Assembly (NCBI GenBank): GCA_964247055.1
Contig: OZ176054.1
Coordinates: forward strand, 1,798,001-1,862,000
Length of the DNA stretch: 64,000 nucleotides
Direction: 5' to 3'
Source of the DNA: Paragordius varius
Lineage: Eukaryota > Animalia > Nematomorpha
Positions 7,501 through 58,034 of the stretch are shown here, in pieces. The notes under the pieces were generated by a model, which worked only from the letters and a program-made list of their open reading frames with translations, made no database searches and was not told the origin of the DNA. Position 1 is the first letter of the stretch. Each line of letters begins with the position of its first letter. The position numbers and the translations under genes were made by a program.

Positions 7501-7870
7501 GAAATATATATACTTCATAAAAAATATTTTCACCTAGATTTTGACGAACTATTATATGTGTGTAAGAAAATAATTTAAAAAATTTAAAATATTTATTTTA
7601 CAAATTAATCAATATAAAATTCGTCTATAAAGAATTCAAAGTTTTAAGTGCTGATCATGAAATTTTTGAGTAAAAAAGCATTTGGATGTTTCTACATAAG
7701 GAATAAAAAAATTTATTGAATCATTATAAACTCGACCAAATAATCATAAAATTTACTATATAAAAATTAAAATTTTGTTTCTCACAAAATAAACAAATCA
7801 CATCTGATTTTGGTATATACATCTTTTACGATTGACTCATTTGGTAAAGCTCCAAGTATTATTTCTAATT

Positions 7871-8503
7871 ATGTCGGCGCATGGATCAAATACTGAGAAA
7901 TCTAATGGTAATAATCATCGTCATGGCCATGGCAAACATCTTGTTGAATTAGAAATATCTGGTATGGGATCCAGTTTATCCGATCATCCTAGAGGCATGA
8001 CAGTTGATGCACTTCATGTCGATGAAGAATATGCCAAAGAACAAGGATTGCCACCTAACCAAAAGCTCATATTAACAGATAAAGATGCTCTTTCAACTGT
8101 TGAAGCTTTTAGATTAGAACACCCTGATGGCATTACTATGGCCGGTGATGAATCTGAACTATACCGCGATGAATTGGATGAGCTTGATTTTGAACAAGAA
8201 AAATTTGGCGTTCATAAAGGCGGAAAAGGAAGATCGAAAGGTGACATAGCTGCTCATCAAAGGCCAGATCCATCAGGAAATGTACGTAAAGTCGTGAATA
8301 ACCTTGTGAATAATCAAAAAAACCAACGTACCAATCACGTAATTCAACACGGGTTGACCAAAGATGAACGGGCAGCCATACGGGAAGCCCAAGAAAAAGA
8401 ATTGGAAGAAATTGGTAAGAAAAAACGGCATGAAGACCCGGGCAAATTGACACATGCCGAACAACACATGTTGGAGGAATCAATTGAGAATGAGGCTCAT
8501 TAA
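7871..8503 (+). CDS. Intronless 210-aa hydrophilic, acidic/His-rich protein of unknown family (probably largely disordered)
   Basis: The open frame is markedly GC-richer than its flanks. First in-frame ATG is 7871 (in-frame TGA at 7805). AATAAA at 8788. Coding-like composition (EEYAKEQGLPP, DELDELDFEQEK, REAQEKELEE). Confidence 0.75.
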   Translation: MSAHGSNTEKSNGNNHRHGHGKHLVELEISGMGSSLSDHPRGMTVDALHVDEEYAKEQGLPPNQKLILTDKDALSTVEAFRLEHPDGITMAGDESELYRDELDELDFEQEKFGVHKGGKGRSKGDIAAHQRPDPSGNVRKVVNNLVNNQKNQRTNHVIQHGLTKDERAAIREAQEKELEEIGKKKRHEDPGKLTHAEQHMLEESIENEAH

Positions 8504-23900: not shown

Positions 23901-26900
23901 TATAAAATTGATTTCAATCTAGGTTTATTGCTAACAAGAAACGGAAGGTTTTGTTTAAATTTTGCGGTATATATAACTTTATTGATTTCGAATTGCTTGA
24001 GTGTGACTGACAACTTTTTTATGACGTTCCATGTATCTATTTTATATGTAATTCAATACTTATAATAACTCAACACATACATGCCACATTAAAACAATGA
24101 ACTTTAACCAAAGTCACTAATACGACTGATAAACTTTAAATAAAATTATTTTTTTATTTCAAAAAAAAATTGACAACAGAGAGCGTCTTTAAGTTTATGG
24201 CATTAGTAGATAGGTGTAGAGGTAATTCGATATAATAAAATCAATTTTAGATTAATTAGATTTAATATAAATGTTATAATAATTTTAGATTTGCCATTAA
24301 TTTTACACGTATCAGATGTTTAAGCACCCTGTTAATTAATAAGGAAAGAGGTTAACACTTCGATTCAAATTGGGGTATCTAAATACCCCGGATATGATTT
24401 ATAAAAAACTACTGAAGGAAACGGTCCCAATTTAAACTTATGCTTCTATCCTGTTTAAAATTATATAAATATGCCAAAATATTTTGATAAAATTTTGTTT
24501 TGAAAAAAAAGTTCCATATCAAACTACTTCGACGCCATTTTTATTTTACAAAATTTTTGCAAAATATCGTCTTAATTTAATTTTAAGTGTAAAACTAAAG
24601 CTAAAATTTAATATAAATTACATCTAACATTGATAGAAATAAAAAAAGCGGTGTTTAATGTATTATTTTTTAAATTTACCATTTGACACATGTCACGTTG
24701 ACGAAAATTTTACCTTTCAGTTTTAGCTTAAAATATTTAATATAAAATATTTTTGAATAAAATTTTTTATATATTTAGGTTTATTAATGTTATATAAGTG
24801 CAAAATTTTGCCATGGATTGGATTTCTTCCATACTTTTTAAAGTATTTGATTTTAAGCAGGCCTGGGGTATCCAACTACCCCAATTTGATTCGAAGGACT
24901 AAAATGAGTGTGTTGTATCCAAGTGTTAAATATTTTTATGTAATTAATTATCTTTTAATTTAAATTTTTTATATTTAGGGTGGATTTGCTAAATGTTATA
25001 AATTTACGAACGTTACCACAAATGCTCAATATGCCGCCAAAGTCATAACCAAATCAAAACTTACAAAACCATCACATCGAGACCAGGTACCACCCTTGCT
25101 TTAAAAAAAATTTTTCCACAAATTATTTTAAATACATATACATATTTTAGGATATATTACATTTCTGAGTATACATTTCCAGGATACATAATATATGTTA
25201 AAATAAATATATCACACTCTTTATATTATATTCTCATATTTCTATGATGATTCAACTCTAAAAAACAACACCACGGGTTATAAAACTTAACATTTTTCCT
25301 ATCAAACTTGTTTTATTTAGGGGAGATGTGCCTTTTTACCTGTTTTTGGCATAGAAATGAAATTTTTTTTGTATTTCATGTTTTAATTACTAATGTAAAA
25401 CATACCGCTAAAACATAATTTTTTGACTTGGTGTATATCTTTGATGTATTGCTATTTTTTCATCAAAAAGTTTGTTTAACTTTGACATCTTAATTGTGCA
25501 AAAAACAAAAGATACATATATAGGACATTTTATTTTTCCTCTATGAATTGGTCAGTTGAATACAAATTATACCGGAAATGTATAATTTTTATTTTAAAAT
25601 TTATTTTGTTTTTTTGTTGAAAATAATTTGTTATACTTTTTCAAAAGTATTAATTTTTAATTATGCATGTCTCATATGTGAAAAAAATAGGTTAATCGTG
25701 AAATTGATATCCATAAACCACTAAACCATCCCAACATTGTGAATTTGGTGAATAGTTTTGAGGATGATTACTATCTCTACATTATGCTAGAATACTGTGA
25801 TAATAAAGTAATATATATATATATATACAAAACTTAAAAACAATTCTTTTTTTCCAAAATATATTTATTGAATGATTTTACTATAATAATAAGTAAATAA
25901 ATTACAAGTTTTGAAGGGTAATGGGAAATAGTGTGTGATTTTCTTGCATTATAATAAATAACTAAGCAGCCAGGCAATTATGTAATAAAGAAAGAACAAA
26001 TTTGGTATTAGGCAACAAAGTAGAGCGGAAAAATAGAGATTTTTTCCATTAAAACTAACTACTCTAGTTCTCCGTTTTAATCTAAAACAAATTAGGCACA
26101 AGGTCGCACGCGCATATATTTTAAACTTTTAGTTAGTTCTTTTTATCCAATTTTTAATTGTTCCGAATATGGGAAGACTAGACAGTAATACAATTGATAT
26201 CTATATGGGTTTTGATTTTTGTAAGATAAACTACATTGTGATTAATATTTTGGCTGATAATTAAATATGTTATGAAAATAATGTTTTCTTTACTATATAT
26301 AAGCACTATAGTGTTAGATGATCAATCAGAAAGGGCTTTAACACTTTGATTCAAATTGGGGTAACTGGTTACCTTGGACCATATTAAAATTAATAATTTA
26401 AAAAAACTGCTGAGAGATATGGTTCCAAATCCTATTCATCTATCCTAATAAAAATTATATAAATACGCCATTTTATTTTACAACATTTTTGTTAATATCG
26501 TGTTTTTTATTCTAACGCTAAAAAAGTTTTTTTATCAAAATCACATATGAATAGAAAAGCGGTTTATTTTAATTTATTTTTATAACTAGCTAATGCACAC
26601 ATGTTATGTTGGCTAAATTTTTAATTTCAGGTTTAACAATAAAATGAGTAAGTAATTTTTTTTGAGTGAATCATCCCTTCATTATTGTGTTATAAAAGTG
26701 CACAAACATTTGCCATGGTTTTAATTTATTCCATATTTTTTTGAAATTTGATTTTAAACAGGTCTGGGGTTGTTACTAGTTACTCCAATTTGAAACAAAG
26801 GACTGAAGTATATGTGCTGTATTTAAGTGTTAATTAAATACTCTTGTTATCAACACCCTATGATAAAAATGGTGTGTTTAAAACAAGCAGATATTGGAGT

Positions 26901-27441
26901 CCAAGATTTCTTTCATTAAATTTTTTAAACAAAAAATATTTTTTTCTTCATAAAACTAAATGATTTTTGTTTGTTTTTGTGTGTAAACCAGACCCTAGTT
27001 GAATTGATTAAGGATAATGGGCCACTGTCTGAAGGCGAGGCTCGGTTTTTCCTTCAACAAATTTTGAGCGCTGTTCAATACCTTCATAATGTTGAACATA
27101 TTTTACATCGTGATCTGAAATTGGGTAATATGTTTTTAACGCGAAAACATAAACTAAAGGTTGGCGATTTTGGACTTTCGTCCCATATCAAGGATATCCC
27201 TAAAAAAGTGTAAGAAGACAACAACTACTTTGCTATTTCATTATTGATTTTTTCATACTTTTGAGTGATTTTTGGGTGGTTGATATTAAAACAAACAAAG
27301 AAAGAAAGAAACAAAGGGTCAATGTAATAGAATATTAATTAATGTTTTAAATTTATTATTTATGCCTTTTAAAATTTTTATCGAGACAAGTATATGTCGA
27401 TTTTTAATTTTAAATATAATTAAAATTCGAAATTAGACTAA

Positions 27442-27493
<52 letters not shown>

Positions 27494-30400
27494 AAAATTA
27501 AAATCAAGCGTTAAATATTACTGTGATATCTGAGCAGACGGTAACTCTTTTTTAAAAATTTGTAGAGCAGGGTACAAATTAAATAATTTCATTTTTTTCT
27601 TCAAATAACTTTTATAGATCAATCTGTGGAACTCCCAATTACATAGCACCTGAGATTTTGGCCAAAAAAGAACACGGCTTTCCAGCTGATATTTGGGCCA
27701 TTGGTTGTATCATGTAATTTTTTTATTTTAATTTATTTTACTTTATACTAATTTTAATTTAAGGAAATTGAACCTGGGTTTTCTATTGCTATATATATTT
27801 TTATATATAATCACGTAATTGGTTAAAAACTTTAATTTTTTCCTTTTATAAGCCCATAAAATAGGGGGAATTTAATTTCAATTTAATTTAATTTAATTAT
27901 CTTTCCTCATCTCAACAGCAAAAGAACAAATATCACTATGTATTTTGAAAAAAAAATCAGTTTAAAATATAAATGGTTGTAAAAAATAATTTTTCATGCA
28001 TAAAAATGAATTACAAATTTAATATATCATTTTTTTCATAAACAATTTCACGCATCAAAATTATTATTTTTTGAATTTCCATCACAATTTTTGGGTAAAC
28101 GAACCCTAAAAACATTTTTATTACATGTACGATACAAAATATATTAAGTCACAAAATTTTTATTTTATATTTTATGATTTTAGTTTCTATATATTTTAAC
28201 TGTAATATAAAAAAATGTACGGTTTTTAATTTTTTTATAATTTTAGTGTACTTTTTTTAAAATTATAAAGCTTATAAAAGTATATTGTTTTTTATTAAAT
28301 TTTTGCAAAAATATGATACCGCAATTATGGAGTACCCAAAAAGCCCAATGTAGACATTAATTATTTTAATTTTACCGCTCTGTTTAACTCTAATATATCG
28401 GCATTCCCATTTCTTAAACGTGTAATGAGTTCAAATTAGTGGTTATTTTGAGAACTATTTGTAAAAAAAGAAACACTTTGAATAATTTTTAATTATACTA
28501 TGAGGGGCCTAGACTTACCGACTCTCTTTGTGTTGATATAAAAAATAAAGTTAGGATTTTTAAGCCTAACGCACCATGTTTGTGTTAAATCGACCACCTA
28601 AAAATTTGTAAAAGTTTAAGAATTAAAAATTACCATATTTGGTTGCTTATTTACTTTTGGCATTCCTCGAAACCCCGTTAGTTGTTTAAAATGTAAATAA
28701 CCTAAAATATATGTATTCATACACATATATTGTGTGGTTCTTTTAACATTTACACGTCAAAATTAACATTGTTGTTTGTAAGTTCATATAAATGTGTATA
28801 AAAATATGGTAATGACACACGATATATAAAAAGTAATCACCATTTCGATGAAAATATTAAATTGTTTAAAATTTACACTTTTAATTTCTTACAGTTTTTA
28901 TGACTTTGTAGATAACAAAAGTTCATAACTATAAATAATTCCCTTCAAGTATACACATTAAAACTAATCTTTTATAATTATCTAGACTGTGTTGGACACA
29001 TTATCTGTACTGAATATATATATATATATATAACTGTTATCATAATTTATAATCACTTTTCTTCATCAAAAGTTATTCATTCATATGTATATCTTTAATT
29101 TTCTTATAACACTTAACTGAATCGTTCGTGTTAATATTAACATTATTGTGGCATAAAATCCCTTTCTTAGAACTTTCTTAATGTTATACAAAATGACCTT
29201 TTCTGATTGCCAGGTAAAACAAACTGATTTATATATATTTATATTTATACGTGATCAATTTTATTAAATTTATTTATTTGTATATGAAATATAAATTATA
29301 CGATGTTTTGTGTAAAAATTAATTTATAATATGTAAATTTTATTGCGTTTACATAAGTTACATGGATGGATGGATAATTTATTATTAAACGTTATATGAG
29401 AATGCAAAATGTAGTTAGTTATAAGAATAATGGAAAAATTCAGTAAAGTTTATTAACTCTTACGAGAAACAACCATGTATAAATTTTAATCATAGATGTT
29501 AACAAAGATTTTCGATAAAGCCCTTTTATAAATTTTTAAACCCATTTTAAACATTTTGGTGTAGGTAAAAGGATGGATGAATCATTTATTAGGGCCAAAT
29601 CTAAATAATCTTTATTAACAAGGACATATATTTAAACTGCAAAATTTTACTAGATAGAAAAGTTTCATATGTGTCTTTATTTAAAAGAGCAATAAATTTG
29701 ACTTACATGTGAAATAGGTATGCAATGTTAACTGGTAAACCACCGTTTGAATCTGATAGCTTAGAAGAAACGTACGATCGTATCGCTAAAAATATTTATC
29801 AAATTCCGGCTTCGTTTTCTCAACCTGCCCGAGATTTGGTTAAACGCCTTTTGGCCCCAAGTACACGGAACCGAATAACTTTGAATGAAGTGGTTAGACA
29901 CCCTTACATTCAAAATTCAGAGACGCCTAATTATGGACAATCAAGAAAGACCCCACAACAAAATGAATTTTCCCACATCAAATTATCCTCCACTGGTATA
30001 AATGCTAATGCCCCATCAGTTAATTCAATTGTTGAGGAAGAACAGCGATACAGAAATGGTGCTAGGTAAGGATAATTATTTTTTTGTTTGAATCGCCTTT
30101 AAAGGTTTATGAAAAGATTAACTAATATATGAAATTATTTTGTTCTAGGGACCACTGCAAACGTCATTCAGCCTACATTTTTGACAGTAAACCCGTCAAT
30201 CCAGCATTTAACACAGATCATATCGGTGGATTAATAACTAATGAGCGATATAATATGTTTCGTAATAACAAATCACCAATGCCAATGGCCATTGATGATA
30301 AAGCTCTGCATAATCAATTTACTAAAATTGCACAATATTCACAACCAAGCAATAAATGCAATATAATGATGCCACAAAAACAACACGAAGAAATTAAGAG

Positions 30401-33400
30401 TAGACCACCTTCTAGCATGGGATTGACACAAGGAGTGCAGAAAGAAACGCAAATATTGTATCCAGAACTTGGTGGTGGTGATCTGGTTAAAAACACGGAA
30501 TCCAAAGAAATAATTTCAACTAACCATCTGCTGCAATCAAACAAGGATGTTTGTCCATTTTATGAAAACTGTAATTGCCATCACACCACTACCGCGCTTC
30601 AACATCAAATAGGGATGAATGAACCACACATATCATTGGTCAAACAACAATCTCAGGAGGAAAGAAATGTTAATAGGGGTAAGTAACACAATTCTTAAAG
30701 ATCGAAAAAGTTTGTAAACAATTTTCAATTTTGGCATAATTTGTAATAACGTTTTTCCTGGAATAGATTACATTTATTTTATTTTGTTTATCTTTAATAT
30801 AATACCATACCTATTTTTTAGATATGATACATCCTATCTACGCCCAACCCAAGCGGTACAGTATTGCAATCTGTAATACAGCGGCCATGCTTCAAAATAA
30901 TACCAACAATGATAGAACTGAAATGAAATCTGTCGCTAATCCATCATCAGACAAAGTAAAATTTAGTGTGCCGATCAAATCTGCTACCTGTAACGACATT
31001 AAACAATTTCCAATCGTTTCGAGGTATATAAAAACCGACCGAAAAATTTCTATCTTTTAATAAAAACTATAATGCCCTACAAATACTAATGATAAATTTA
31101 TTTGTTTGTGTATTACAGATACAACGAACCCACAAAAGTTCCAAATAATTATGCTTCTATAATCAACGAGGTATTTACATGTGTTTATCATTTTTTAATC
31201 TTAATGTTATTTATTTTTTAATATTCGACGAAAATGTTTTATGTGTAAGCTTTTTAGTTTGAAAATTAATAAAGCTAACCAAAAATTTACTTATATCATC
31301 TATATAGGATAACTTTGTGTCACAGAATTTTGCGAACTCAAAGAAACGTCCTATATCTGCCATGTTTTCTCCATCCTCAAATTATACTAAAGGAGATGTT
31401 TTCATGCCAAATAGTATATCAGCTACCGGATTAACGAATGGCAAACCATCCTCAACAACACATGTGGTAGGCTTGGCTAATATCATTGAAACCGAAACAG
31501 ATTTGGACACTCAACATTTTCAACAACCGTCATTTTATGATAAAAATATCCAAAGCATCTTACCTAGAAGTAGTCTGATGCGTGAAAGAGCCCGAACATT
31601 TATTAACCCAAATAGTGGCAGGGGTATCGGAAAAAACTCAGCGAATGGTTATTACCCTAATTCGGTTAATAATGGACCAAATATACCGCCAGGGAAAGAA
31701 AGCCGAAATTTTTTGTCCACAGGCTTGGATGCTAAACGGCTTCGAAGTCGCCTTATTAAATGGGTCCATAACGTAAAAACGACAACTGTCCCAAATCCTG
31801 TTGGCGCCATCGATAATGTTAATGGGGATGTTCATTTAATGGCGCATGAGCATGAAGAGTTATTGCAAAATGGCAATTCTACCCCCCAGCAGTCTTCCCA
31901 TATTAAAACAGACATTCTGTCAAATAATTCCCATGCTACAACCAACAAAAAAAGTGGAAAAGATAAGGAGAAGGGCTCAGCTTCTGCTAAACGTTTGTCC
32001 CTCACATCTTTTATGATGTTACGTGGTCGTTCCAAATCTATCGTCGTAACGACATCCAATACTCATCAACATTCGAATTTTGCTAAAATAAAAAACGAAA
32101 ACATAAAAATACCATCTATAGGTTCAATCGCTACTGGACATAATATAGGGTACGATAGGAAGGAAATTAAACAATCGTCTGATTATAACCATAACATGAT
32201 TAATGTTAATAATAATCTTAATAGTAATAAAAAGGATAAAATTGGTGCGTTTTCAACTAATGCATCATTATCTTCAATTTCGATAACAAACAGGCTGCGG
32301 AAACGACTTTCATGCGTATTTCCTTTGGCTGGCCCCACACCAAATCAGCTTATCCATAATCCGAATATCCCAAGTTTTCCAATTGTGAATTCGAATACGC
32401 CTTCTAACGCTACTGAAAATTTAAACCATCAAAATACATCTCCCTTTAACAATCACTACCGTAACGATTATCAAAATTATAATTATATGGCCGCAGAGAA
32501 AGATTCAAACAAACTGGTTCGCTCTGACACAGGATTTTATTCGCAAACTCCTTCGCCGTGTCCCGCTGTATCGTCAAAATCAATCTTGCACAAAGAAAGC
32601 TATGTATCACCGCCCAATAATATAACTCATTCTGATCCTATATACGCTAATACTCACGCCTTGCTAGATTATAACAATCAAAGGAAGGTCATTATGGACC
32701 GAAATGAGAATGCAGCTGATAATAATGGTAATCATCATAATCTTCAAAGGCACGAATCCACAAACACGCACGAACAAAATCGAAGTGGCGGTACAGGTGA
32801 CAGTACAAGGTCCTCTTCCAGTGGAGTCGAATGCCAAACGCCTTCCGCCTCAAGTTCTGTCAACAATCATTTGCAAGTAGCAAATGGCGAAAAATTCGTT
32901 CAGACAGACCATAAACAACAAGAGCCAAACAGATATTTCGAAAATCCAAATTACCCTCACGAACAAGATAAAAACGGTGCTGCATTGCATCGTGACAGAG
33001 AAATGATTCATGAGAGATTTCACGAAAACAAGAAACTGGAATACGAAACAGATTTTGCGACAGCGCCCTTGAAAACAAAACTACAAACCATACTTCACAT
33101 CGTAAATGTGATTATCAGGGAATGTGAACAATCACTATTTAACCATAATGATATATGCGCCGCAAAAAATTTTGTCCAAAATCCCTACAATTGTGAAATC
33201 TCTTTTGAATCTATATTAGGTAACAGTTTTCATATTAATTCATAACTCTTTCTTTAAGGGAGCCTATTCTATAATCTTCGGTTTCATTCTTTTTTTCAAA
33301 TAATGGTTCAAATTTATTACCATTTTTAGAAGTTATTATTATGATACAATCTGGATAAGGTTTCAAAAGATAAAAACAGTATTTGCAGCGAAATTTCTTT

Positions 33401-35649
33401 TAGCAGGCCATATTTAATATATTCAAAAAATCTAAAATCATTAAAAATTTTAAAATAAATTAAAAAATATTTTTAACCACAGTTCTTACCCATAAAGTAT
33501 TTGCCTCAAATAATTAGAAGCATATTCAATTATTTATTATGTTGAAATACAACAACAATTTGATTTTCATTTTGGTTTTATTAGTCTAAGGCGTTCGTAT
33601 CATTCATATATAATCAAAAATATTTTTTTATATATAATAGACCCATCTGTATACTCTTTCACACCCACGGATGATGCACAGCCACACCAGTCCGAAGCAA
33701 TTGAACTCAAATTGAAAAGCAACAATCAGTTAACCGCATATACGATAGCGTGGGTAACTAAATGGGTTGATTATGCCGAGCGATATGGATTTGGATATCA
33801 ACTTTCGGACGGCAGTAGAGGCGTTTTATTCAAAGATAAGGAACGGATCTACGTGGCTGATCAAAAGTTTAATTTTGTTTGTTTTCATTTATGTAGTTAT
33901 CTTTAGATTAGATTATTCAAAACTAAAAGAAATTTCTTTATCCAAATATTTTGAACTTTAACTCCTTGGGGAGTATGTTTTGCAAAGATGTAAAACTTTT
34001 CTTATAAAATTTTGTGTAACTTTTTTGAACTTTTCGTGTCTTTTTCTTATGTTTAAATTTTTTTAAACCATTTCGTAATGTTGCACAATAAAATTGGTTT
34101 AAATTAAAGAAATTGTCTCAACCATTTATGATCAGGAGATTACAGTATGCATTTTAATGGTTGCTTATTTAACACTAAAGTAGGGCGATTTGCAACACAG
34201 TAGTGTATGGAAAAAAGAGTAAAATTACACTCCTGTGTTGCAAATTGCCCTACTATAGTGTGAAATAAGCGACCCTTAAAGTGCATACTGTTTTATAATA
34301 TATATATAAATACTATTTTTAATCGCAATTTATCAAAAACATTGTTTGATAACCTATTTTTCTCTATTTATTTTGTGTGCTTTTAGAATTTGTTTATATG
34401 ACGAATCCAACGCTCTGCGACTCCTCTTACCCCTTAAGAGTAGTGAAGCACTTTTGAGATACCCGCCTCCGGAATTCGCTGATAAATTGAGCGTTTACAT
34501 ACATTTTGCAACTTTTATGGAACGAAATTTGGTCGATAATGGAAGAAAAGCATCTAATAATAATCCCGTAAAAAATTAATCTTATAATCATAAGTGACAC
34601 TAAAATATGATACAATTTTTTAATTTTTTAATCAATATCATATATCGAATTCACATTTGAATCTTTTAAAAATAAATAGTTGTTTTCGGGCTGATATAAC
34701 TCATACTGACATTAAATATTTCTTTATGGCATAGTTTATTATTGTTTTTTGTATGTTAATTTCAAACGAAATTTCATTTTTTCAATATTAAAAATATAGG
34801 TTTTTGATAATCAAAAACACATAATTTATTTTAGGGTAAATTTAAAATGTTCAAAAATGAATTTAAATTGTTCGAGGGTAAATTTACAATGCTAAGGGTA
34901 AATTTGAGTTGTTAATGGTATATATATATATATATATATATATTTAATAAATCGTAATGTTATAACCGATTAGTGATCTTTAATTGATTTTTATACTTAA
35001 TACCTCATTAAATTATATGTAGATTTACGATGATAAAACATTGATAAATTCGAAAAACGATTATCCTAATAAAAACCATCAAGTCCAACATCAGTACGTT
35101 ATATATAAACGATTTACCTCAACACAAACGGATAAAATCAAGTCAGCTAATAACGCGGGAAACTCGAAAGAAAAAAGGTATATTTTGAAATTATTAGAAT
35201 TCAGTAACAATTCACTTTATTCTAAGCATATGAATATTTTGGTTACTACAAATAATCCTTATCGAATGTGAGAAAATAAAATTAAAATACAATGATAAAA
35301 ATATGCTAAATAATATTTTAGATACGATAGCTTATGGATGATACTAAATGATGGTACGTGTCAGCTCAATTTTCTCAGAGATCACATAAAAATGATTTTC
35401 GGTTTTCCGTCTAACAAAACATGTACATTGATGCTTATAGATGGTAAACGAAATCAGTTTTCTATCGATTTACCTATGGCATCATTGGACAAATCTCAGC
35501 AAACCATTTCCACTTTTAAAATTTTACAAAAGCCAATGTCAAAAGTTAATAATGAAAACGATGGCATGTTCCTTTCTTTAATGGGATTTTACGAAAAATT
35601 AAAGATATTTTGCGCCTACCTAAAACTCGATGATGTTTTGGCTTTGTAA
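20998..35649 (+). CDS. PLK: Polo-like kinase (PLK1-3 group, PLK2/3-like polo box), 14 exons, ~1734 aa: 20998-21639, 24979-25086, 25691-25807, 26992-27209, 27618-27713, 29718-30065, 30149-30678, 30822-31023, 31119-31170, 31308-33219, 33641-33866, 34387-34567, 35023-35267, 35322-35649
   Basis: Kinase motifs LGK|[44 protein letters not shown]. Polo box 1 [27 protein letters not shown]; polo box 2 [15 protein letters not shown], with the His/Lys phospho-pincer. All junctions are GT-AG and phase-consistent; total 5205 nt is divisible by 3. The exon 4 and exon 12 donors are slightly uncertain. Confidence 0.92.
24352..24929 (+). mobile_element. Family A piggyBac-like MITE in PLK intron 1
   Basis: TTAA-CACTTCGATTCAAATTGGGGTA ... 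ATACCCCAATTTGATTCGAAGG..TGTATCCAAGTG-TTAA (reading ACTACCCC at the inner repeat); it ends 49 nt upstream of exon 2. Confidence 0.9.
26338..26833 (+). mobile_element. Family A piggyBac-like MITE in PLK intron 3
   Basis: TTAA-CACTTTGATTCAAATTGGGG ... AAGTG-TTAA with a homologous interior. Confidence 0.85.
27445..27491. repeat. (TA)n microsatellite in PLK intron 4
   Basis: Perfect TA run of ~47 bp. Confidence 0.95.
34142..34291. mobile_element. 150-bp fold-back (hairpin) MITE, Tc1/mariner-like CAGT termini, in PLK intron 11
   Basis: 66-bp inverted arms (34142-34207 / 34226-34291) with 7 mismatches and an 18-nt loop; the left end reads TA-CAGTATGC. Confidence 0.8.
34833..34920. mobile_element. 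Right end of a family B2 MITE in PLK intron 12
   Basis: AGGGTAAATTT..TTGTT units ending in AATGG-TA, followed by a (TA)n run. Confidence 0.6.
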
Positions 35650-38291
35650 TTTTTTAAACTTTTATGATATAAAAGTAAAGGTTACGGTACAAAACTCAGA
35701 ACAAAAAACAGCAAATACAAATTACTCAAATGCTATCTCTATCTTCCATTTTTTTTAAAAATGACACGCAACTATGCATTTTCAAATACAAATATATTAC
35801 TAATCTCTTTATTAAACATATTTGATACTTTTTCTACCTCATTTGGGGGGCTACTATTTTATAGAATTATATTATATTATAAACGTATATGATACATTCA
35901 TTAATCTCGCATATAAAGGTGCATTTATCATTAAAAATGTTGGTTATTAATCCATTTATACATATACTACTTTGTATATCATATTTTAAGGTAGATTTTA
36001 TCAAAATAACAATTAATTATATGAACGCACCTAAGTATTATTTTTAACTAATTATTTCATTGTTTTATTACATAATTTTTTGGACTTTTAATTATTTTTT
36101 AACATTTGTAATGTAATAATATTTTATGACTTATGAATGTGATTAATTGGAATTCTATTTTTCCGATACTAATAAAGACGATTATGACACCAATTCCAAA
36201 CTTTTATATTTGATTTTGCATTCATACCACATAACCATATGCAAAACTGCACATTTTTGTAATATATATGCAAAGTATCCGTTTGTAATACTTTTTATCA
36301 GCTCCGGCAATAATAATAAATTTTTTATCTATTCTTGGCTCAAATTTAGTCGGGTACTTAATATGAATTGATTTTTTCGTTTGTTTTTAAATCTGATTGA
36401 TTAATTAATTAAACCTAATTTATCATCCTTAGAGGGATTTCGGAGTTACCAAACAACCTCATGATAAGTGCTGGAAAGCATTCTAAAAAAACTAACAATA
36501 CAATCAATAAAAAAAGAAAGCGTTTTACCAATTAAACTTTATTTATTATATTATACATCGATTAATACTTAGGGTGTGCGAAAAAACCGGTTCAATTGTT
36601 GGTTAGAACACTGTTTCTAAGACAGCTTTTTAGGAAAGGTCTATGATGCACACGGATCATCCAGTCAGAGCCTAATTAAAAATCACTCAATTTGTAATTC
36701 ACGCGTTTGTGAGGTTTTAATAATTTTTTCTAGTCTACCACTTCTCCAAAAATATAGCTTTAAAGTAATTTTAGAGAATCCAAACGTAAAAAACTATTTT
36801 TAGATAGTGAGGGCTTATTGAGGCTAATCCAAAAATTATCCGACGATATAATAAATTTTTTAAATCTCAAATGGTTTATTAAGTTTTTCGGAAAAATGAT
36901 ATATAGTTTATTCTTAATTCTCTTGTTAAAATAATAAATAATACAACAAATAAATATTTAAAATTGATTTTTTAAAGTCTAGGAGTTATACTAAATTTAA
37001 AGCATAGATCGCGAGTATACAAATCAAATTTAACTTATAATCATTAACATTCCTATTCAAAATTTTTGCCTTGTTGAACTTTTATTCTAAAATGGGCTGT
37101 TTTTTTTTAAAAAAATTATAGTTTATACATTTAAGTTTCGTTTTTGAACAATTTTGGTTATGCTGATCGTACTGATGAGTGCTAACAATCACAAAACTAG
37201 TCTGCGATTACTATTGACGAAAGGGTTTCACATATCATTTATAATTTCTATTTATACTTTCATTTAGTTCTACTTAATTATCCTTTATCGTTATATTACG
37301 GATTCAACTGTTATTACAAAACATAACCAATCCGTTATTTACCATTATAAAGAGTTTTTTTGTTCATGAATATCCGCTTTACAAGCGCAATCTTTTTTAA
37401 TATTTTAATGCTTATTTGACGTTTATGATATTCATACTGTGCCCCTTACAACTATGATATCTGATTGGTGTTAATTTGTAGTAATCGGCTAGTAAATATT
37501 TAAACAAAGCATAAACATTAAACGATACGAGCGCATCTATTTATATAATATAAATATCACAATTGGTTATATAGAAAAAAGGATACTGATTTAGTTTAGT
37601 AAATACGGCACAATTAATTTTTAGTATAACTTTAAAATGGACAAAATATTGGTGTATTAAATAAAGTAAATGTTAAATATATGAACAAATTAAGCGGATA
37701 TTATTGAGGCATGAAAAAAACAACGGGTTCATTTCTATTTTGATTCTAAAACATATCAATCACATTTTTATAAATTATATGAATAAATTAGGAAAATATT
37801 TGGAAAAATGTTGCACGATCAATAATAATAAAAATGAGTTAAGGACAAACATATAGTAAAAATTCAATTATACGGACAAAACGTAAAAATATAAAGACAA
37901 ATATTTTTTTAAACACGAGAACCATACTTTTTCAAACCTTAATTTTTCCTATAAAAACTATAGTATAAAATATATAATTGATTGTGTTACATAATGTACA
38001 CTATTTTACACTTTAATCAAGATTAGATAAAGTATGTTTGTCTTTTACATAAAAATATTTGTCTTTACATTTTTATGTTTTGTCCGTATAATTAATTGCC
38101 TTTTTACTGTATATTGACTACAAAAATGACATGGATTTTAACGGGACACGCGTTTGCACTAAAAAGAACAATTACCAAATTGTTATAAACTTGTGTGGAA
38201 TGTCTCAAATGTCAAATAAAATATAGGTTATATAAATTAAATATTTTATGATAAATGCTATATTATTCACACCACTAGGCGATACGATATG

Positions 38292-39092
38292 TTATTGGTG
38301 TCGAAATAAACTGTTAAATTCAGGGGACGTATTAGTTGAAGAAACATTATAATTTTTCATCGAGTAATGATATGACGCAGGGGGATGTTTGGTTTGATTT
38401 GAATGATTCTTTTTGGCTTCATTTAATTTAAAGGCGGCGTCGTTTGGCTTTTTATAACTTTTTATGCTCTGTGATGTCGATTTTTGAGGTTGACCTTTTG
38501 TAGAAACATTTTTGAAAGTTCGTTTATCACTGCTTGCTTCTATATCTTTCGGTACAAACGTCGGATCATGTAGAAAAGCCATGGTATTATTGGTTTGATC
38601 AGAAAAATTTGTTGTTAATCTTTTACCTATTAGAGAATCATGTGGGCTACTTGGGGTAACATTGAATAATAAATTATAGCATTCGGATAAAACGTGTATA
38701 GTTTCACGAGCACTAGCTTTTAACAAAAGTAAATCATGATCCATCATTGCAATGTTTGATTTGTTGGGAATAGTTGATAAAGCTGGAGTTTTATCATCAA
38801 TTATATTATTACAATCATTTAGGGGTAATAAATTTAAAACAACATTTTTGCTATCATTTGGTAAGTGTTTAAACTGACAAGATTTTACATTCCGTTTAGA
38901 ATCAATCAGTTCCCCACCACCTTTAAACACGGGTGACATGGTAGAAGGCAACAAAGGAGTTGATTTATCAATATTATTCGAACAAGATTGTGGATCTTTG
39001 GGTAAATCTTTCCTGTTATTGCTTCTGTTTTTATTGTTATTATTAAAGACTGTGGATGTGGAAATGTTAATATGATTGGATTTGGGTGTATT
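38292..39092 (-). CDS. Terminal exon of the ORP9/10/11-like gene (middle helical region; no lipid-binding ORD seen)
   Basis: The frame is open from the acceptor TTCTAG| at 39092 (phase 0) to the stop at 38292. It contains DHDLLLLKASARETIHVLSECYNLL, resembling the DQDLLMLKATS..MNCLNDCFHIL segment of OSBPL10/11 (from memory). Confidence 0.7.
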   Translation of the reverse strand, partial: NTPKSNHINISTSTVFNNNNKNRSNNRKDLPKDPQSCSNNIDKSTPLLPSTMSPVFKGGGELIDSKRNVKSCQFKHLPNDSKNVVLNLLPLNDCNNIIDDKTPALSTIPNKSNIAMMDHDLLLLKASARETIHVLSECYNLLFNVTPSSPHDSLIGKRLTTNFSDQTNNTMAFLHDPTFVPKDIEASSDKRTFKNVSTKGQPQKSTSQSIKSYKKPNDAAFKLNEAKKNHSNQTKHPPASYHYSMKNYNVSSTNTSPEFNSLFRHQ

Positions 39093-41257
39093 CTAGAATT
39101 AAATTATATAAAAAAGTATATTTGTGCCTTTAATAAGCATCCTTGGTGTAATTTATATTAAAATAGCTTGGATAACATGATAACACAATCCTTCACGAGT
39201 ATTGATATTTGTTAATGGGTAATTTAAAAAAATAATTCATAATATTTATTAATCTACTTAATTAAAATTTTCCGAATTTAATTGGTGAAATTAAACCGTT
39301 TATTTAAATAGCTAAAATTATTTTGTTGCTCAATATATATATGTATATATATCGCTCCGTAATTAAGTTAAAAAAGTAAATAATAAACGAAAAACTAGTT
39401 GATATTAATGAATATAGACTAATTAGAGGCCTTTTAAATTTGCGATTTGTACTAAATGGGGTTGGTTTTAATTTATTGTATTTTGAATTAAAAAAAGGCG
39501 AAAATTAGGGTATCCTACGGATTTAAAAAGGAATCTCAAAGTCTAGGGCCTGTTTAAATATTATAAGTTATTTAAATATAAAGGGTTGCCTCTGTTTGCC
39601 CCAGATATTGTAATTGATGAGTTTTACTAATCATAAAAATAAAAAAAAAATCTTTAAAACTTTTAACCAAGGGTAAAAATTATCTACTGATATTTTATTT
39701 GACATTTGATTAATTTTTTAAAGATAAATTTTAGTAACAGTGTTGATAGAAAAGTGTGTTTAAATGCTTTTTTCTGTTTAATATTTTTTAAATCCAACGT
39801 ATGGGTTTTTTAAACAAGTTTACGCAATAGAATAATATCGGTGTATAATCATAATTTTAATTTTAGAAAAAATAAAAATTAAAAAAAAAACTTACATTAA
39901 TTAAATTATAAATGTCAGTGTAATGGTTTTGTGTATTCCTTAATACTTCCCGAACCACCTTGAAATGATTTTGATCTAAATTTCTAAAACATAATATATA
40001 TATATATATATACCCCTCAAGCAAAAGGGTGAATATATACAATGGATTTAAAAAATTTAATATATGCCCAAAAAGCATGGCTTAAAACAATGGTAACCGT
40101 GGACTAAAAATACTTTTTATGGCCTTAAATTATTTATTAAGTTTTTGATATATACCATTTACAACATTTCGAGTTGGTTTTTTAACAATTTTATTTTGTT
40201 TTCAACTTTAAAGTTGATAGCGATTCATAAGTTTAAGTCAAATAAATATAGATTAAAAAGATAGGATAATGAAATGGAAATTAAATTACAATATATTTTT
40301 ATTAATCTTATATTAAATATAATATAAAAATTTTGTGGATTGTTAATTGTAATTTTCCATTTATAATTTAAAAAATTGTCAAATTGAAAAAATAGTTCGA
40401 AAAAGGCTTTTTTGAATTAAAAATATAATTTTAAATGAAATATTAGTAAGAATTAAGGATATTTGGTTAAAAGATAAAAAATAGATAACATATACAATTA
40501 TAGTTATATGCAAACTAAAAAAACATGGACCAATTTAAGTGCTTAGTTGAAGTTTTCAAAGACCAACTTAAAGAGTTAAACACTTGTAAAATACAAATAG
40601 CTCTAAAAATATTATAGTGAAAACATGATAAGTATTTATTGCGCCTTTAAAATTTTTTTAATTACTGGTGGCTTCAATAAAAATAATTTATAAAATTATA
40701 TATTGTTTTAACTCACTAAATTCCAATATTTCCGTATTAAGCTAAAAGAATTAAAAATTGCCATCTTAGATGTACGCTAAGAAAATCGTTTAAAAACAGA
40801 CCACCGGAAAAATTAAAAAGTTGTTTCAAATTTTCAAAAATTACACTTGCTTAAAACGGATTGATATGATATGGAATAATACGATGAAAAATTATGGTTA
40901 TCCATAAAAAACAATTCTATTTCGAAATTATATTTCCGTCGTATAAGGGTTGGGTTGTGTTTTTAAAAGGCCAAAATGATAATAAACAGTCAAATACAAA
41001 AATAATTATAAGTTTAAAAATAAAACGAAAATAAGGTAAAAATATGTTTTTATTAGAGAGTCTCAGATAAAAATGATAAAATAATCAGATACCAGATTTT
41101 TTATGTAACTCCATTATATTTAAAAATCCCTAAAAGCAGGACCATTAAAAAATTATTTTTAATTTTAAAATATCTAATTAAACGCTCCTTTATCTTAGTA
41201 TAAGTTATGGGCTCATATGCTCTCAGTCATGTGACATAAATCATTTTCAGGAAAAAA

Positions 41258-42011
41258 CTAATTTGAAAAATATATTTGCCGATATTTATGTAAATAACTG
41301 ATCAAAAACTTGTAAGAATTTTTGTAATCAGTGGCAAATGTATTTTGAGATGTCTTTGATAATTGTGTAGTGTTTTCAGTGGATTTTGATAGCTCTTCTT
41401 GTGCATTAGAATAAACGTTGGAAGTTTGATTTGTATCAAACGAAAATAAATTGGAGAAAGTATTTATAAAATTTTGATAATTCATGTCTGTATTTAATAA
41501 ATTATTTGAAGGTTTCTGTGTACTATCATGATTATCCATCTTTGGTAAATCCATTTTCTAAATTTTATTATATAATAAGTATATTCGTGAAAATTTATCA
41601 GTCAAATATAATAGTTTTACATGTTTCTCTGCTGTATAGCGTAAACGATCTATCCAAAGCTGGCGCTCTTTGCTATCAACGGCTGCAACGTTATATAAAG
41701 AATACTTTTTAATTTTAGAACCTCATCATTTTTCAGAATATTAAAAATTAATGGATCTTCTTCGCTTGGTATGACCGAACTACCCTAATTGCTTAAATAA
41801 CAAAAATCTACTTGCAAAAATATCCTATTGCGTGGCTTGATATTTGCTTTCCAGGTATCTTCCGTCTAATAATAAAAAGTAACTATACAATGTAATAATC
41901 CAAAAATCCAGTTTGTGGATCTATCACAAACCATCGAAACTGAAACCCTTTGACCAAATTTGTAAATTTAAGCAAATATCCTCGTAGAGAAGTGTCAAGT
42001 TCAGCTGACAT
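41258..42011 (-). CDS. PH domain of oxysterol-binding-protein-related (ORP9/10/11-like) gene; exons 42011-41889, 41865-41812, 41784-41706, 41682-41621, 41557-41258
   Basis: Spliced translation MSAELDTSLRGYLLKFTNLVKGFQFRWFVIDPQTGFLDYYI|TEDTWKANIKPRNRIFLQ|GSSVIPSEEDPLIFNILKNDEVLKLKT|VDSKERQLWIDRLRYTAEKH| is a complete ORP-type PH domain. Introns are 23, 27, 23 and 63 nt, all GT-AG. In-frame upstream ATGs at 42023 and 42056 are possible alternatives. Confidence 0.85.
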
Positions 42012-42091
42012 AATTAAACGCATGAGGCTTATCGTAAAAACATTCTTCTGTTTCATTTACAAAGACGACCCCACGTTGCGGCAAAAACGGG

Positions 42092-42095
<4 letters not shown>

Positions 42096-42163
<68 letters not shown>
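42096..42163. repeat. (AT)~34 microsatellite immediately 5' of the ORP-like gene
   Basis: Perfect 68-bp AT run, 40-85 nt upstream of the candidate start codons. Confidence 0.95.
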
Positions 42164-43647: not shown

Positions 43648-44226
43648 TTAACACTTGGATACAACACACTCATTTTAGTCCTTATTCAAATTGGGGTATT
43701 TGGATACCCCAGGCCTGTTTAAAATAAAATACTTTAAAAAATATGGAAGGAATTGAAACCATGGCAAAATTTTGCACTTATATAACATTAATAAACCGAA
43801 ATATATAAAAAATTTTATTTAAAAATACTTGATATTACTTATTTTAAACTAAAACCGAAAGGCAAAAATTTCGTCAACGTGACATGTGTGAAATATTAAA
43901 ATTAAAAAATGATACAAAATAAACCGCGTTTTTTATTTCCATCAATGTTATATGTAATTTAGATTAAAAATTAGCTTTAATTTTACCCTTAAAATTAAAT
44001 GATATTTACAAAAATTTTGTAAAATAAAAATGGCGTCGAAGTAACTTGACATGGAACTTTTTTCAAAACAAAATTTTAATAAGCTATTTTGGCATATTTA
44101 TATAATTTCTATTAGGATAGAAGCATAAATTTAAATTGGGACCGTTTCCTTCAGTATATTTTTAAAAATATTAATTTAAATTTAGTCTGGGGTATTTAGA
44201 TACCCCAATTTGAATTGAAGTGTTAA
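43648..44226 (-). mobile_element. Family A piggyBac-like MITE, reverse orientation
   Basis: TTAA-CACTTGGATACAACAC ... CCCCAATTTGAATTGAAGTG-TTAA; the reverse complement of the 24352 copy. Confidence 0.9.
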
Positions 44227-52093: not shown

Positions 52094-53309
52094 AAGAGAA
52101 CCGGACCGGCTTCCGCTGAATTCTCTCGGGGTAACGTCGCTCGTGCGGATTTGCATTGATATTGTCATTATTATTATTAATGTTATCATTGCTACTTTCA
52201 TTATTATTATCATTTATTTTATCATTATTATTGTCATTACTATTGTTATTATTATCAATACTACTATCATTATTATTATTGTTATTGTCTATATTACTAT
52301 CATTACTATTGTTTGGAGTAACCGGTGCGGTTGAGTTGGCCGGTAGGTCTACGTGTTTCAACTGATCTGCATGCTTTCTGACAATCTTCTGGTTTACCTG
52401 ATCCCACACACTGTACGAAAGGAGACCCGTTCTATCAACAACATCGCCGGCTCGCCATCCAAAATTTTGTTCGTTTCTCATCATTACGGGTTGGTTTATT
52501 GAGAATTCACGGCGTGGCCGGGGTGCGTCTAAGATTTTTGCTTTTGTGTTGATCCAGGTGAGGGGTGTTTGAGATACTCGTTTGAAGAGTAGTTGAAACG
52601 GGGTTTCTTTTGTAGTCGCATGTATTGAATTACGATACGACCATAGAGTGGTATTGAAAGCTTCTTGTGGTGAAATATTATCATTTTTGATTTTTCTATA
52701 CTTGCCCTTGAGGGTCCCCACTAACCTTTCTACCATCCCATTACTTTTAGGATGATAGGGGGTTACCCTCACGTGTTTAATACCCAAGTTTGTTAGAGTA
52801 GTGGATGTGAAGTACGAATTACTGAAATAAGAAGCATTATCACTAATAACCGTCCTCGGAAACCCAAACCTGGCAAAGGTTTCCTCGAGTTTATGCAATA
52901 TGTTTACCGAATTAACCCGTTTTAACAAGAACCCTTCCGACCATTTTGATGAGCTATCAATCAATAACAACCAATAATACCCGTCAACTGGTCCCGCTAT
53001 ATCGATGTGTAACCGCTCCCATATCGCAGCATTTGGATCCCATTGATAAGTCGGATTTTCAACTAGGCTTGGCTTGTTTACTTGACATGAACTACACTCA
53101 CTGTATCTTCTTACCAAATCGTTCTCTAATTTTGGCCAAAAACAGGTAAACCTTGCCATTGCTTTCATTGTTTCTACGTTATTGTGCCCGCTGTGTAAGT
53201 AATTGACCACATTTGCCTGTAAGCTTTCTGGGATGATAATTCGATCGTTTAAACTGAGCAATCCGTATTGGTACGAAATCTCTCCCTTCCGATTCGTAAA
53301 CCCAGCCAA
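52092..53309 (-). CDS. Ty3/Gypsy (K02A2.6-like) integrase, 5'-truncated pol fragment with uninterrupted frame
   Basis: HHCC zinc finger (LHSGH...CSSCQ); rve core D(IAGP)..D(NA)..HPKSNGMVE; C-terminal SH3-like segment, Asn-rich tract and RRYPERIQRKPVRF tail. No gag/PR/RT/RH in the window. Confidence 0.93.
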   Translation of the reverse strand: MAGFTNRKGEISYQYGLLSLNDRIIIPESLQANVVNYLHSGHNNVETMKAMARFTCFWPKLENDLVRRYSECSSCQVNKPSLVENPTYQWDPNAAIWERLHIDIAGPVDGYYWLLLIDSSSKWSEGFLLKRVNSVNILHKLEETFARFGFPRTVISDNASYFSNSYFTSTTLTNLGIKHVRVTPYHPKSNGMVERLVGTLKGKYRKIKNDNISPQEAFNTTLWSYRNSIHATTKETPFQLLFKRVSQTPLTWINTKAKILDAPRPRREFSINQPVMMRNEQNFGWRAGDVVDRTGLLSYSVWDQVNQKIVRKHADQLKHVDLPANSTAPVTPNNSNDSNIDNNNNNNDSSIDNNNNSNDNNNDKINDNNNESSNDNINNNNDNINANPHERRYPERIQRKPVRFS

Positions 53310-54876: not shown

Positions 54877-56626
54877 TTAACACTTCGATTCAAATTGGGT
54901 ATCTAAATACCCCAGACTAAACTTCAGTTAGGATTTTTAAAAAACTAATGAAGCAAACGGCCCAAATTTAAATTTATGCTTCTCTCCTAATAAAAATTAT
55001 ATAAATATGCCAAAATATCTTAACACTTGAATACAACACATTCATTTTAGTCCAAATTGGGGTAGTTGGAGACCCCAGGCCTGTAAAAATCAAATACTTT
55101 AAAAGTGTGGAAGGAATCGAAACCATGGCAAAAATTTGCACTTATATAACATTGATGAACGGAAATATATAAAAAGATTTATTCAAAAATACTTGATCTT
55201 AATTATTTTAAGCTAAAATCAAAAGGTAAAAATTTAGTCAACGTGACACGTGTGCAATTGTAAAATTGAAAAATAATAAATGAACGGCTTTTTCTAGTTC
55301 TATCAATAGATGTAATTTAAATAAAAAATTAGCTTTAATTTTACACTTAAAATTAAAAGAAGGCGATATTTTGTAAAAAATTTGCAAAATAAAAATGGCG
55401 TCGAAGTAGTTTGACATGGAACTTTTTTATCAAAACAAAATTTTTTAGAGATATTTTGGCATATTTATTTAATTTTTATTAGGATAGAAGCAAAAATTTA
55501 AATTGGAACCGTTTCCTTTAGTAGTTTTATAAAACTATTAGTTTAAATTTAGTTTGGGGTATTAAGATATCCCAATTTGAATCAAAGTGTTAATGACGCC
55601 ATTAACATCTTCATGTAATTTTAAAGGTTAAATTAAAGCTAATTTTTTATTTAAATTACATCTAACATTATAGAAATAGAAAAAGCGGTTTATTTTGTAT
55701 TAATTTTTTAATTTTACTATTTCACAAATGTCACGTTGACGAAATTTTTACCTTTCGGTTTTAGGTTAAAATAAGTAGTATCGAGTATTTTTGAATAGAA
55801 TTTTTTATTTATACCATTTGCACATCAAGAGCCTTGAACACTTCAGGTTGGTCCTTGAACAGTTCAAGTTGGTTATGAAAAATTCAAGTTGGTCCTTGAA
55901 CAATTCAAGTTGGTCCTTGAACACTTCAAGTTTTTGACTTTTTTGTTTTGTTTTAAACTTTATCAATCAAATAGTATATTATTCATCTTTTTTATTGTTT
56001 TTAACCTATTTTTAACTATTTAACATAAATTTCAAATCGATATCAATAATCTTTGAGAAACCGTATATCTTTAGTAATTTGTTAAAATAATTTTGGATAT
56101 TTATAAGATTTTAACACGAAATGAAAAAATATATAAGTTTTCTGGGTTATTAATTAAAATCTTTCATTAAAAACATTTAAAATTCAATAATTTTGTTCAA
56201 TTGAAATAAAATAGTTTGAAACAAAAAAGTGGTTTTTTAATAAGTTTTTTTATTTTTAAATGAATAAATATATAATAATTAAAGAATATTAGGTTAATAA
56301 ATAATAAATTAAAAAAAATAAATGCAAAATCTATGGTTAAATCAAAATTTATATATTTTAACCAACTTGAAATGTTTAAGGACCAACTTGAAGTGTTCAA
56401 AGACCAACTTGAATTGTTCAAGGACCAACTTGAAGTGTTCAAGGACACTCTTGAAGTGCAAATGGTACATTTCGGTTTATTTATGTTATATAAGTGGAAA
56501 ATTTTGCCATGGTTCCTATCCCTTCCATACTTTTTTAAAATATTTGATTTTAAACAGGCCTGGGGTATCAAACTACCCCAATTTGAATCGAAGGACTAAA
56601 ATGAGTGTGTTGTATCCAAGTGTTAA
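54877..56626 (+). mobile_element. Family A MITE carrying a nested reverse family A copy (55020-55593) and a family B insertion
   Basis: TTAA-CACTT left end at 54877; interrupted at TTAA 55020 by a complete reverse copy ending TTAA 55593; resumes and ends AAGTG-TTAA at 56626. Confidence 0.8.
55812..56467. mobile_element. Family B TA-flanked (Tc1/mariner-like TSD) MITE with 21-bp subterminal arrays
   Basis: TA-CCATTTGCAC...GTGCAAATGG-TA. Removing it restores the family A sequence TTTATA-CATTTCGG. Left array is (AAGTTGGTCCTTGAACA(C/A)TTC)x~5; the right array is inverted x~4. Confidence 0.88.
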
Positions 56627-56699
56627 TTATTCTTTTACGGGTTTTTGCATTGGCTATATTGTTTACTCGAAATATACCATATTCTGTCCCTTATTAAAA

Positions 56700-58034
56700 T
56701 TAACACTTCGATTAAAATTGGGATTTAAGTTAGGATTTTTAGAAAAGTACTGAAGGAAACGGTCCCAATTTTAATTTTGCTTCTATGCTAATCAAAATTA
56801 CATGAAAAGCCAAAATATCTAAATAAAATTTTGTTTTGAAAAAAAAGTTCCATGTCAAACTACATCGGACGCTATTTTATTTTACAAAATTTTTGCAAAA
56901 TATCGTCTTAATATAATTTTAATCCTTTAGTAGTTTTATAAAACTATTAGTTTAAATTTAGTTTGGGGTATTAAGATATCCCAATTTGAATCAAAGTGTT
57001 AATGACGCCATTAACATCTTCATGTAATTTTAAAGGTTAAATTAAAGCTAATTTTTTATTTAAATTACATCTAACATTATAGAAATAGAAAAAGCGGTTT
57101 ATTTTGTATTAATTTTTTAATTTTACTATTTCACAAATGTCACGTTGACGAAATTTTTACCTTTCGGTTTTAGGTTAAAATAAGTAGTATCGAGTATTTT
57201 TGAATAGAATTTTTTATTTATACCATTTGCACATCAAGAGCCTTGAACACTTCAGGTTGGTCCTTGAACAGTTCAAGTTGGTTATGAAAAATTCAAGTTG
57301 GTCCTTGAACAATTCAAGTTGGTCCTTGAACACTTCAAGTTTTTGACTTTTTTGTTTTGTTTTAAACTTTATCAATCAAATAGTATATTATTCATCTTTT
57401 TTATTGTTTTTAACCTATTTTTAACTATTTAACATAAATTTCAAATCGATATCAATAATCTTTGAGAAACCGTATATCTTTAGTAATTTCTTAAAATAAT
57501 TTTGGATATTTATAAGATTTTAACACGAAATGAAAAAATATATAAGTTTTCTGGGTTATTAATTAAAATCTTTCATTAAAAACATTTAAAATCCAATAAT
57601 TTTGTTCAATTGAAAATAAATAGTTTGAAACAAAAAAGTGGTTTTTTAATAAGTTTTTTTATTTTTAAATGAATAAATATATAATAATCAAAGAATATTA
57701 GGTTAATAAATAATAAATTAAAAAAAATAAATGCAAAATCTATGGTTAAATCAAAATTTATATATTTTAACCAACTTGAAATGTTTAAGGACCAACTTGA
57801 AGTGTTCAAAGACCAACTTGAATTGTTCAAGGACCAACTTGAAGTGTTCAAGGACACTCTTGAAGTGCAAATGGTACATTTCGGTTTATTAATGTTATAT
57901 AAGTGCAAAATTTTGGCATGGTTTCGATTCCTTCCATATTTTTTAAAAAAATAAATTTTTAACAGGCCTGGGGTATTTAACTACCCCAATTTGAATCGAA
58001 GGACTAAAATGAATGCGTTGTATCCAAGTGTTAA
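56700..58034 (+). mobile_element. Second composite family A unit containing a 967-bp near-identical duplicate of 55515-56481 (incl. family B copy 57221-57876)
   Basis: TTAA-CACTTCGATT at 56700 and AAGTG-TTAA at 58034. 56924-57890 matches 55515-56481 at a constant offset of 1409 with only a handful of differences. Confidence 0.85.

Follow-up and report, generated by a model that had tools for sequence, protein, structure and literature searches.

To our knowledge, animals were long thought to lack introns shorter than 30 nt. In a survey of 51 metazoan genomes, introns below 30 bp were found only in myxobolid myxozoans and in Dicyema japonicum, in which, as its main text describes, the 5′ motif is reduced to GTA and an A-rich stretch precedes the AG (Hadjez et al. 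2026, PMC13644364). An earlier, sequence-only reading of the DNA analysed here had named ciliates, nucleomorphs, microsporidia and dicyemids as the main bearers of ultra-short introns. The myxobolid myxozoans have to be added to that list on the evidence of the same survey, whose main text names neither Nematomorpha nor relatives of Gordionus.

The window, the whole 64-kb stretch of DNA that was analysed, contains a gene in which three segments of 23, 27 and 23 nt interrupt a PH domain. The proposal of the sequence-only reading, that they are spliceosomal introns, is very probably right, and the comparison below places these introns of 23-27 nt at ancestral positions; we put the probability at roughly 0.85. 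The assignment is favoured by the GT-AG ends, the restored domain, the position and phase shared with orthologous genes, the DNA contigs obtained independently and the pattern of variants.

Three short segments in a PH domain gene

The open frame starts at the ATG at 42011 on the minus strand and is interrupted three times inside 330 nt. The recognised parts of the gene are as follows.

Exon 1, 41889-42011, minus strand: 41 codons from ATG 42011, first half of the PH domain.
Intron 1, 41888-41866, minus strand: 23 nt, GTATAG..TTAG, phase 0, after ..DYYI.
Exon 2, 41812-41865, minus strand: 54 nt, 18 codons, colinear with 2d9x (the human ORP11 PH domain) and the ORP11-like profile.
Intron 2, 41811-41785, minus strand: 27 nt, GTAGAT..TTAG, phase 0, after ..IFLQ.
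Exon 3, 41706-41784, minus strand: 79 nt, colinear with 2d9x and the ORP11-like profile.
Intron 3, 41705-41683, minus strand: 23 nt, GTATTC..GCAG, phase 1, within the codon after ..LKLK.
Exon 4, 41621-41682, minus strand: 62 nt, end of the PH domain (..KERQLWIDRLR..), with tblastn, PDB and profile matches.
Intron 4, 41620-41558, minus strand: 63 nt, GTAAAA..TTAG, phase 0, linking the exon 4 frame to the open frame 41557-41258.
Exon 5, 41557-41300, minus strand: low-complexity linker, with candidate donors near 41306 and 41294.
Last recognisable exon, 39092-38295, minus strand: 266-codon open frame with the central LLLLKA..T..L..C family motif, ending in TAA.

A second in-frame ATG lies upstream of the first exon as listed, at 42056. 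A perfect (TA)34 microsatellite occupies 42096-42163, 40 nt upstream of the gene's first in-frame ATG.

Re-reading of the sequence gave the same coordinates, lengths (23/27/23 nt) and termini for the three segments as had been claimed. All three begin with GT and end with AG, as does the 63-nt intron 4; the 5′ ends of introns 1-3 are all GTA, and the 3′ ends are TAG or CAG. The earlier claim that none of the segments can be read through was reproduced in every case. If intron 1 is kept, GTA TAG is an immediate stop; intron 2, if kept, is read as far as the in-frame TAG with which it ends, and intron 3 shifts the frame. In tblastn alignments intron 2 appears as a stop-terminated insert of nine residues (VDFCYLSN*), which is present in none of the homologues. 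Alternative GT and AG sites near introns 1-3, inspected by eye, lead to a frameshift or a stop, and the boundaries are therefore unique. Because retention of any one of the introns gives a premature stop, only a fully spliced mRNA would encode the PH domain.

Since single exons are too short for Pfam scoring, PDB chains, tblastn and our own profile, built from nine full-length ORP11-like proteins, were used instead. Exon 1 alone matches residues 9-42 of the PH domain of human ORP11 (PDB 2d9x; E 6.5e-8) and positions 27-63 of the profile (57.6 bits). Joined exons 2-4 match residues 47-106 of 2d9x (E 1.7e-7), with no gaps at either junction. The complete joined product, of 106 residues, is an unbroken PH domain that scores 127 bits against the profile as one domain. 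Over 97-99 residues it shares 50-54 % identity with proteins of a fluke (Schistosoma rodhaini), a snail (Biomphalaria) and a tapeworm (Spirometra). With a single domain in the joined product and unique boundaries, the statement that the PH domain is co-linear only when the three segments are removed holds.

Downstream of the PH domain the gene structure continues through longer introns. The position of intron 4 is not exactly common to the orthologues in the alignment, and three variants fall inside it. The tiny introns are at the 5′ end of the gene (23, 27, 23, then 63 nt), and the next intron measures ~2.2 kb. TTCTAG at 39093 is a plausible acceptor for the frame starting at 39092, which has tblastn matches at 38822-38643 and covers profile positions 218-329 (E 2e-5).

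The earlier label of the gene as an ORP could be kept in part. An N-terminal PH domain of the OSBP/ORP type, as in ORP9/10/11, is present; compared with human ORP11 (2d9x) and its ORP9/10/11 subfamily, the gene shares a PH domain colinear over residues 9-106 and a central LLLKATSQAT-type motif, whereas its linker is low-complexity and N-rich and the window holds no ORD. Motif, tblastn and profile searches of both strands of the 64-kb window found no C-terminal ORD with the EQVSHHPP signature; the HHPP motif is absent from the window, and there is no profile match past model position 329. The label therefore needs a caveat: the protein encoded here may have no ORD, the locus may be a truncated copy, or the ORD may be encoded at a distance of more than 38 kb. 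The missing ORD bears on the present splicing of the introns here, not on their being introns.

Intron positions in orthologous genes and predicted splicing signals

The sequence-only reading had suggested checking whether the three positions match ancestral introns. We compared the locus with the ORP11-like genes of Biomphalaria glabrata (XP_013092942.2), Hydractinia symbiolongicarpus (XP_057290683.1) and a third animal (L003). Each orthologous protein was mapped exactly on its own DNA and then aligned with the joined product of the window. The intron lengths at the three sites were:

Site 1, phase 0: 23 nt in the window, 129 nt in Biomphalaria, 212 nt in Hydractinia, 1019 nt in L003.
Site 2, phase 0: 27 nt in the window, 103 nt in Biomphalaria, 377 nt in Hydractinia, absent in L003.
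Site 3, phase 1: 23 nt in the window, 830 nt in Biomphalaria, 2483 nt in Hydractinia, absent in L003.

All three sites coincide in alignment column and phase with introns of the mollusc and the cnidarian gene, and site 1 also with an intron of L003. By our own arithmetic, the chance that three disruptions fall on three specific sites among ~315 codon-phase sites is ~2e-7. The Biomphalaria and Hydractinia introns at these sites are ordinary U2-type introns with GTAAGT-like donors and polypyrimidine tracts. They have the same column and phase as the short segments, but are 103-2483 nt long and carry the full GTAAGT and polypyrimidine signals. The identity of columns and phases with those of ordinary introns argues that the short segments are shrunken ancestral introns, not insertions or products of decay. 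Many fragmentary ORFs of other animals in the databases end at YYL followed by V (GT), which would fit a widely kept intron at site 1.

The segments thus have the marks of U2-type introns: GT..AG ends, a conserved coding sequence restored by their removal, and the position and phase of introns in orthologues. A U12-type reading was considered for intron 3 (GTATTCTTT) and rejected. The intron has a resemblance to the U12 type, without the RTATCCTT 5′ signal or the TCCTTAAC branch site, and the orthologous introns, with GTAAG or GTAAT, are U2-type.

In the explanation that we prefer, the introns are very probably U2-type introns that were inherited from an ancestral animal gene of the ORP9/10/11 type and then reduced in length, to 23, 27 and 23 nt, in a nematomorph-like lineage. 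Their removal would be carried out by the major spliceosome through intron definition. The signals used would be GTA alone at the 5′ splice site, (T/C)AG at the 3′ end and, as the branch point, an A ~7-9 nt before the AG. Each of the three introns has A residues at this distance from the AG (TTTTAT, TTTAAG, TATAAC), as picked out by eye. With this arrangement the branch point would follow the 5′ splice site at a distance of only ~15-19 nt, far under the limits of the yeast and human spliceosomes.

Independent contigs, variants and other explanations

Logan contigs of four public runs from three studies were placed on 36300-42085. In all four runs the depth was even across introns and intergenic DNA, so the runs behave as DNA. 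The three segments were full-length in X1 record 8 (41646-42043), X4 record 24, X6 record 32 and X2 record 16. The sequence-only reading had named assembly errors as an observation that would speak against it; the presence of the segments in independently assembled contigs from four runs puts such errors out of consideration. The X1 contig has one 1-nt insertion somewhere within 41646-42043, which we counted against the preferred explanation.

The variants described here are those listed, up to 41792. In PH exons 3 and 4 the three listed substitutions (41642 in exon 4; 41718 and 41776 in exon 3) are all synonymous. Introns 2 and 3, which together comprise 50 nt, contain four substitutions and a 1-nt insertion among the listed variants. 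Intron 2 differs in other contigs by two substitutions or by the 1-nt insertion, which makes it 28 nt long in three runs; all of these variants extend the A-run 6-10 nt before the AG. The variants of intron 3 are at positions +5 and +6 and leave the GTA unchanged. In the linker exons the only indels among those listed are of 3 nt (+TTA at 41412; 38765 and 38768 together -3). This pattern shows coding constraint on the exons and none on the short segments.

Of the explanations that compete with spliced introns, the one that survives best, though we consider it unlikely, is that the locus is a dead or partial ORP11-type copy, made of PH domain and linker after loss of the ORD, and that the segments are relics of introns with no transcription or splicing at this place. 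It would account for the missing ORD in the 64-kb window and for the repeats that adjoin the 3′ end of the gene: directly beyond the TAA (38294-38292) very high-copy repeats begin, with a word depth of 1e5-1e6 at 37844-38229 and 37072-37457. It also agrees with the many non-synonymous variants in the linker exons and with the lack of any RNA run or database protein that covers the locus. Words of the locus were absent from the listed RNA runs of the same species label, which are tiny in size, and the protein collections searched contained no protein spanning the junctions. The query with exon 1 gave no near-identical match there, and the 266-codon frame (39092-38295) had no protein matches. 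A dead copy is, however, difficult to reconcile with the state of the sequence, since every exon frame is open, all splice-site dinucleotides are intact, the listed changes in the PH exons are synonymous and the linker indels come in multiples of three. Moreover, even if the locus were such a copy, the introns of the parent gene would already have been equally short.

Removal of the segments by a route other than the spliceosome, such as DNA elimination of the kind seen for ciliate IES, or a bypass during translation, appears very improbable. The length of the segments does resemble that of ciliate IES, and model spliceosomes could not work with so small a distance between 5′ splice site and branch point. 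On the other side, the segments end in GT..AG and not in TA..TA, they agree in position and phase with ordinary U2-type introns of other phyla, and no joined form was found among the DNA joints listed. Weaker still is the view that the segments are assembly or sequencing artefacts within one continuous exon, raised solely because AT-rich long-read assemblies can contain small indels: it is hardly credible for stretches of 23-27 nt that have GT..AG ends, stand at ancestral intron sites and are thus unlike homopolymer errors, and that recur in the independent contigs.

The remainder of the window and known short-intron systems

Outside the ORP11-type locus we annotated the following features.

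NUPR1/p8 open frame, 7832-8503, plus strand: PF10195 DNA-binding phosphoprotein domain (E 1e-10), in a frame much longer than the usual p8.
Polo-like kinase (PLK) gene, 24979-35649, plus strand: kinase exons 24979-25087, 26971-27210, 27583-27714 and 29725-30069; polo box 35338-35649.
Rhodopsin-type GPCR, 45920-44487, minus strand: single exon.
Retrotransposon integrase, 52095-53309, minus strand: H2C2 zinc domain and rve core, then an N/D/I-rich tail.
815-codon open frame, 61437-63884, plus strand: no Pfam family, no homologues among 5.8 billion proteins.
Short repeated element, at ~700, 24790-24930, 43690-43790, 56500-56700 and 57850: one copy in a PLK intron, with a common translated motif.

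The coexistence of tiny introns with large ones in the neighbouring PLK gene, which had been pointed out earlier, was borne out, with kinase exons lying ~0.37 and 2.0 kb apart. Among the PLK exons, the one for Pkinase profile positions 43-78 was not found. The PLK gene is interrupted by a low-complexity open frame of 642 codons (31317-33245). High-copy repeats fill the window, as judged from word depth, and the short repeated element looks like a MITE family. An Rfam search of the window gave no matches. The GC content of the window is ~26 %; that of the published Gordionus montsenyensis genome is 26.93 %.

The GPCR had only six matches among 5.8 billion proteins, all of them proteins of Gordionus sp. 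m RMFG-2023 with 36-37 % identity and E-values down to 2e-85. Judged from these matches, it looks like a member of a nematomorph-specific receptor family. We take the window to come from a nematomorph that is a relative of Gordionus and distinct from it. The six Gordionus paralogues are on one 54.6-Mb contig, and the two that were located lie ~5 Mb apart on one chromosome. In a synteny search, no ORP gene was found in the 21 kb around each of these two paralogues.

On balance we favour the view that horsehair worms, or at least the lineage represented here, have to be counted as a third animal lineage, independent of the other two, in which spliceosomal introns fall below 30 nt. They would be the first case of a large, transposon-rich genome where such introns make up a class of their own, placed at the 5′ ends of genes and accompanied by kilobase introns. 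If this is true, extreme intron shortening does not need genome compaction, and the presence of tiny and kilobase introns together in a genome of the nematomorph type would separate miniaturisation from compaction. It would also raise the question of how one spliceosome can handle a spacing of ~15-19 nt between 5′ splice site and branch point as well as ordinary introns.

There is a practical side to the finding: RNA aligners and gene finders that assume a minimum intron of ~20-40 nt will break genes like the ORP11-type locus. If the reading is right, a part of the 'missing' universal genes and of the low BUSCO values in nematomorph genomes could reflect failure of annotation at tiny introns. 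The word 'intron' is absent from the Gordionus genome paper, which reports a BUSCO completeness of 71.6 % (10.1101/2023.06.26.546503), and from a 2024 nematomorph comparative preprint. For this reason the claims of gene loss in the phylum deserve to be checked again.

Among the described systems, the ciliates offer one point of comparison. Paramecium introns (~25 nt, PMC5014332) are in the same size range, have GT-AG ends and, like those described here, are exposed by stops or frameshifts when retained; the 15-16-nt introns of Stentor, as cited in the main text of PMC13644364, also fall in this range. Ciliates differ in that they are protists with almost exclusively tiny introns and have no class of long introns alongside. 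The introns of myxobolids and Dicyema, as characterised in the main text of PMC13644364, are closer: they are animal GT-AG introns of 20-30 nt with GTa as the 5′ signal, little or no polypyrimidine tract and a few A residues upstream of the AG, they occupy conserved positions between conserved exons, and their bearers are parasites, all of which they share with the introns in the window. In myxobolids and Dicyema, however, the genomes are small (75 Mb in Henneguya) and the median intron measures 22-27 bp (PMC13644364, main text). Here the gene with tiny introns at its 5′ end also contains introns of 63 nt and ~2.2 kb; it lies in a repeat-rich window of 26 % GC, with PLK introns of 0.4-2 kb next to it, and the lineage belongs to the Ecdysozoa. 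By length (23/27/23 nt) and by their 5′ ends (GTATAG, GTAGAT and GTATTC, compared with GTAAGT in the orthologues) the three introns fall into the sub-30-nt class. Genome-wide shortening, with a median intron below 30 bp in a compact genome, does not describe what was found, given the 63-nt and ~2.2-kb introns of the same gene, the 0.37- and 2.0-kb introns of PLK and the repeats. The kind of intron is already known; the lineage is not.
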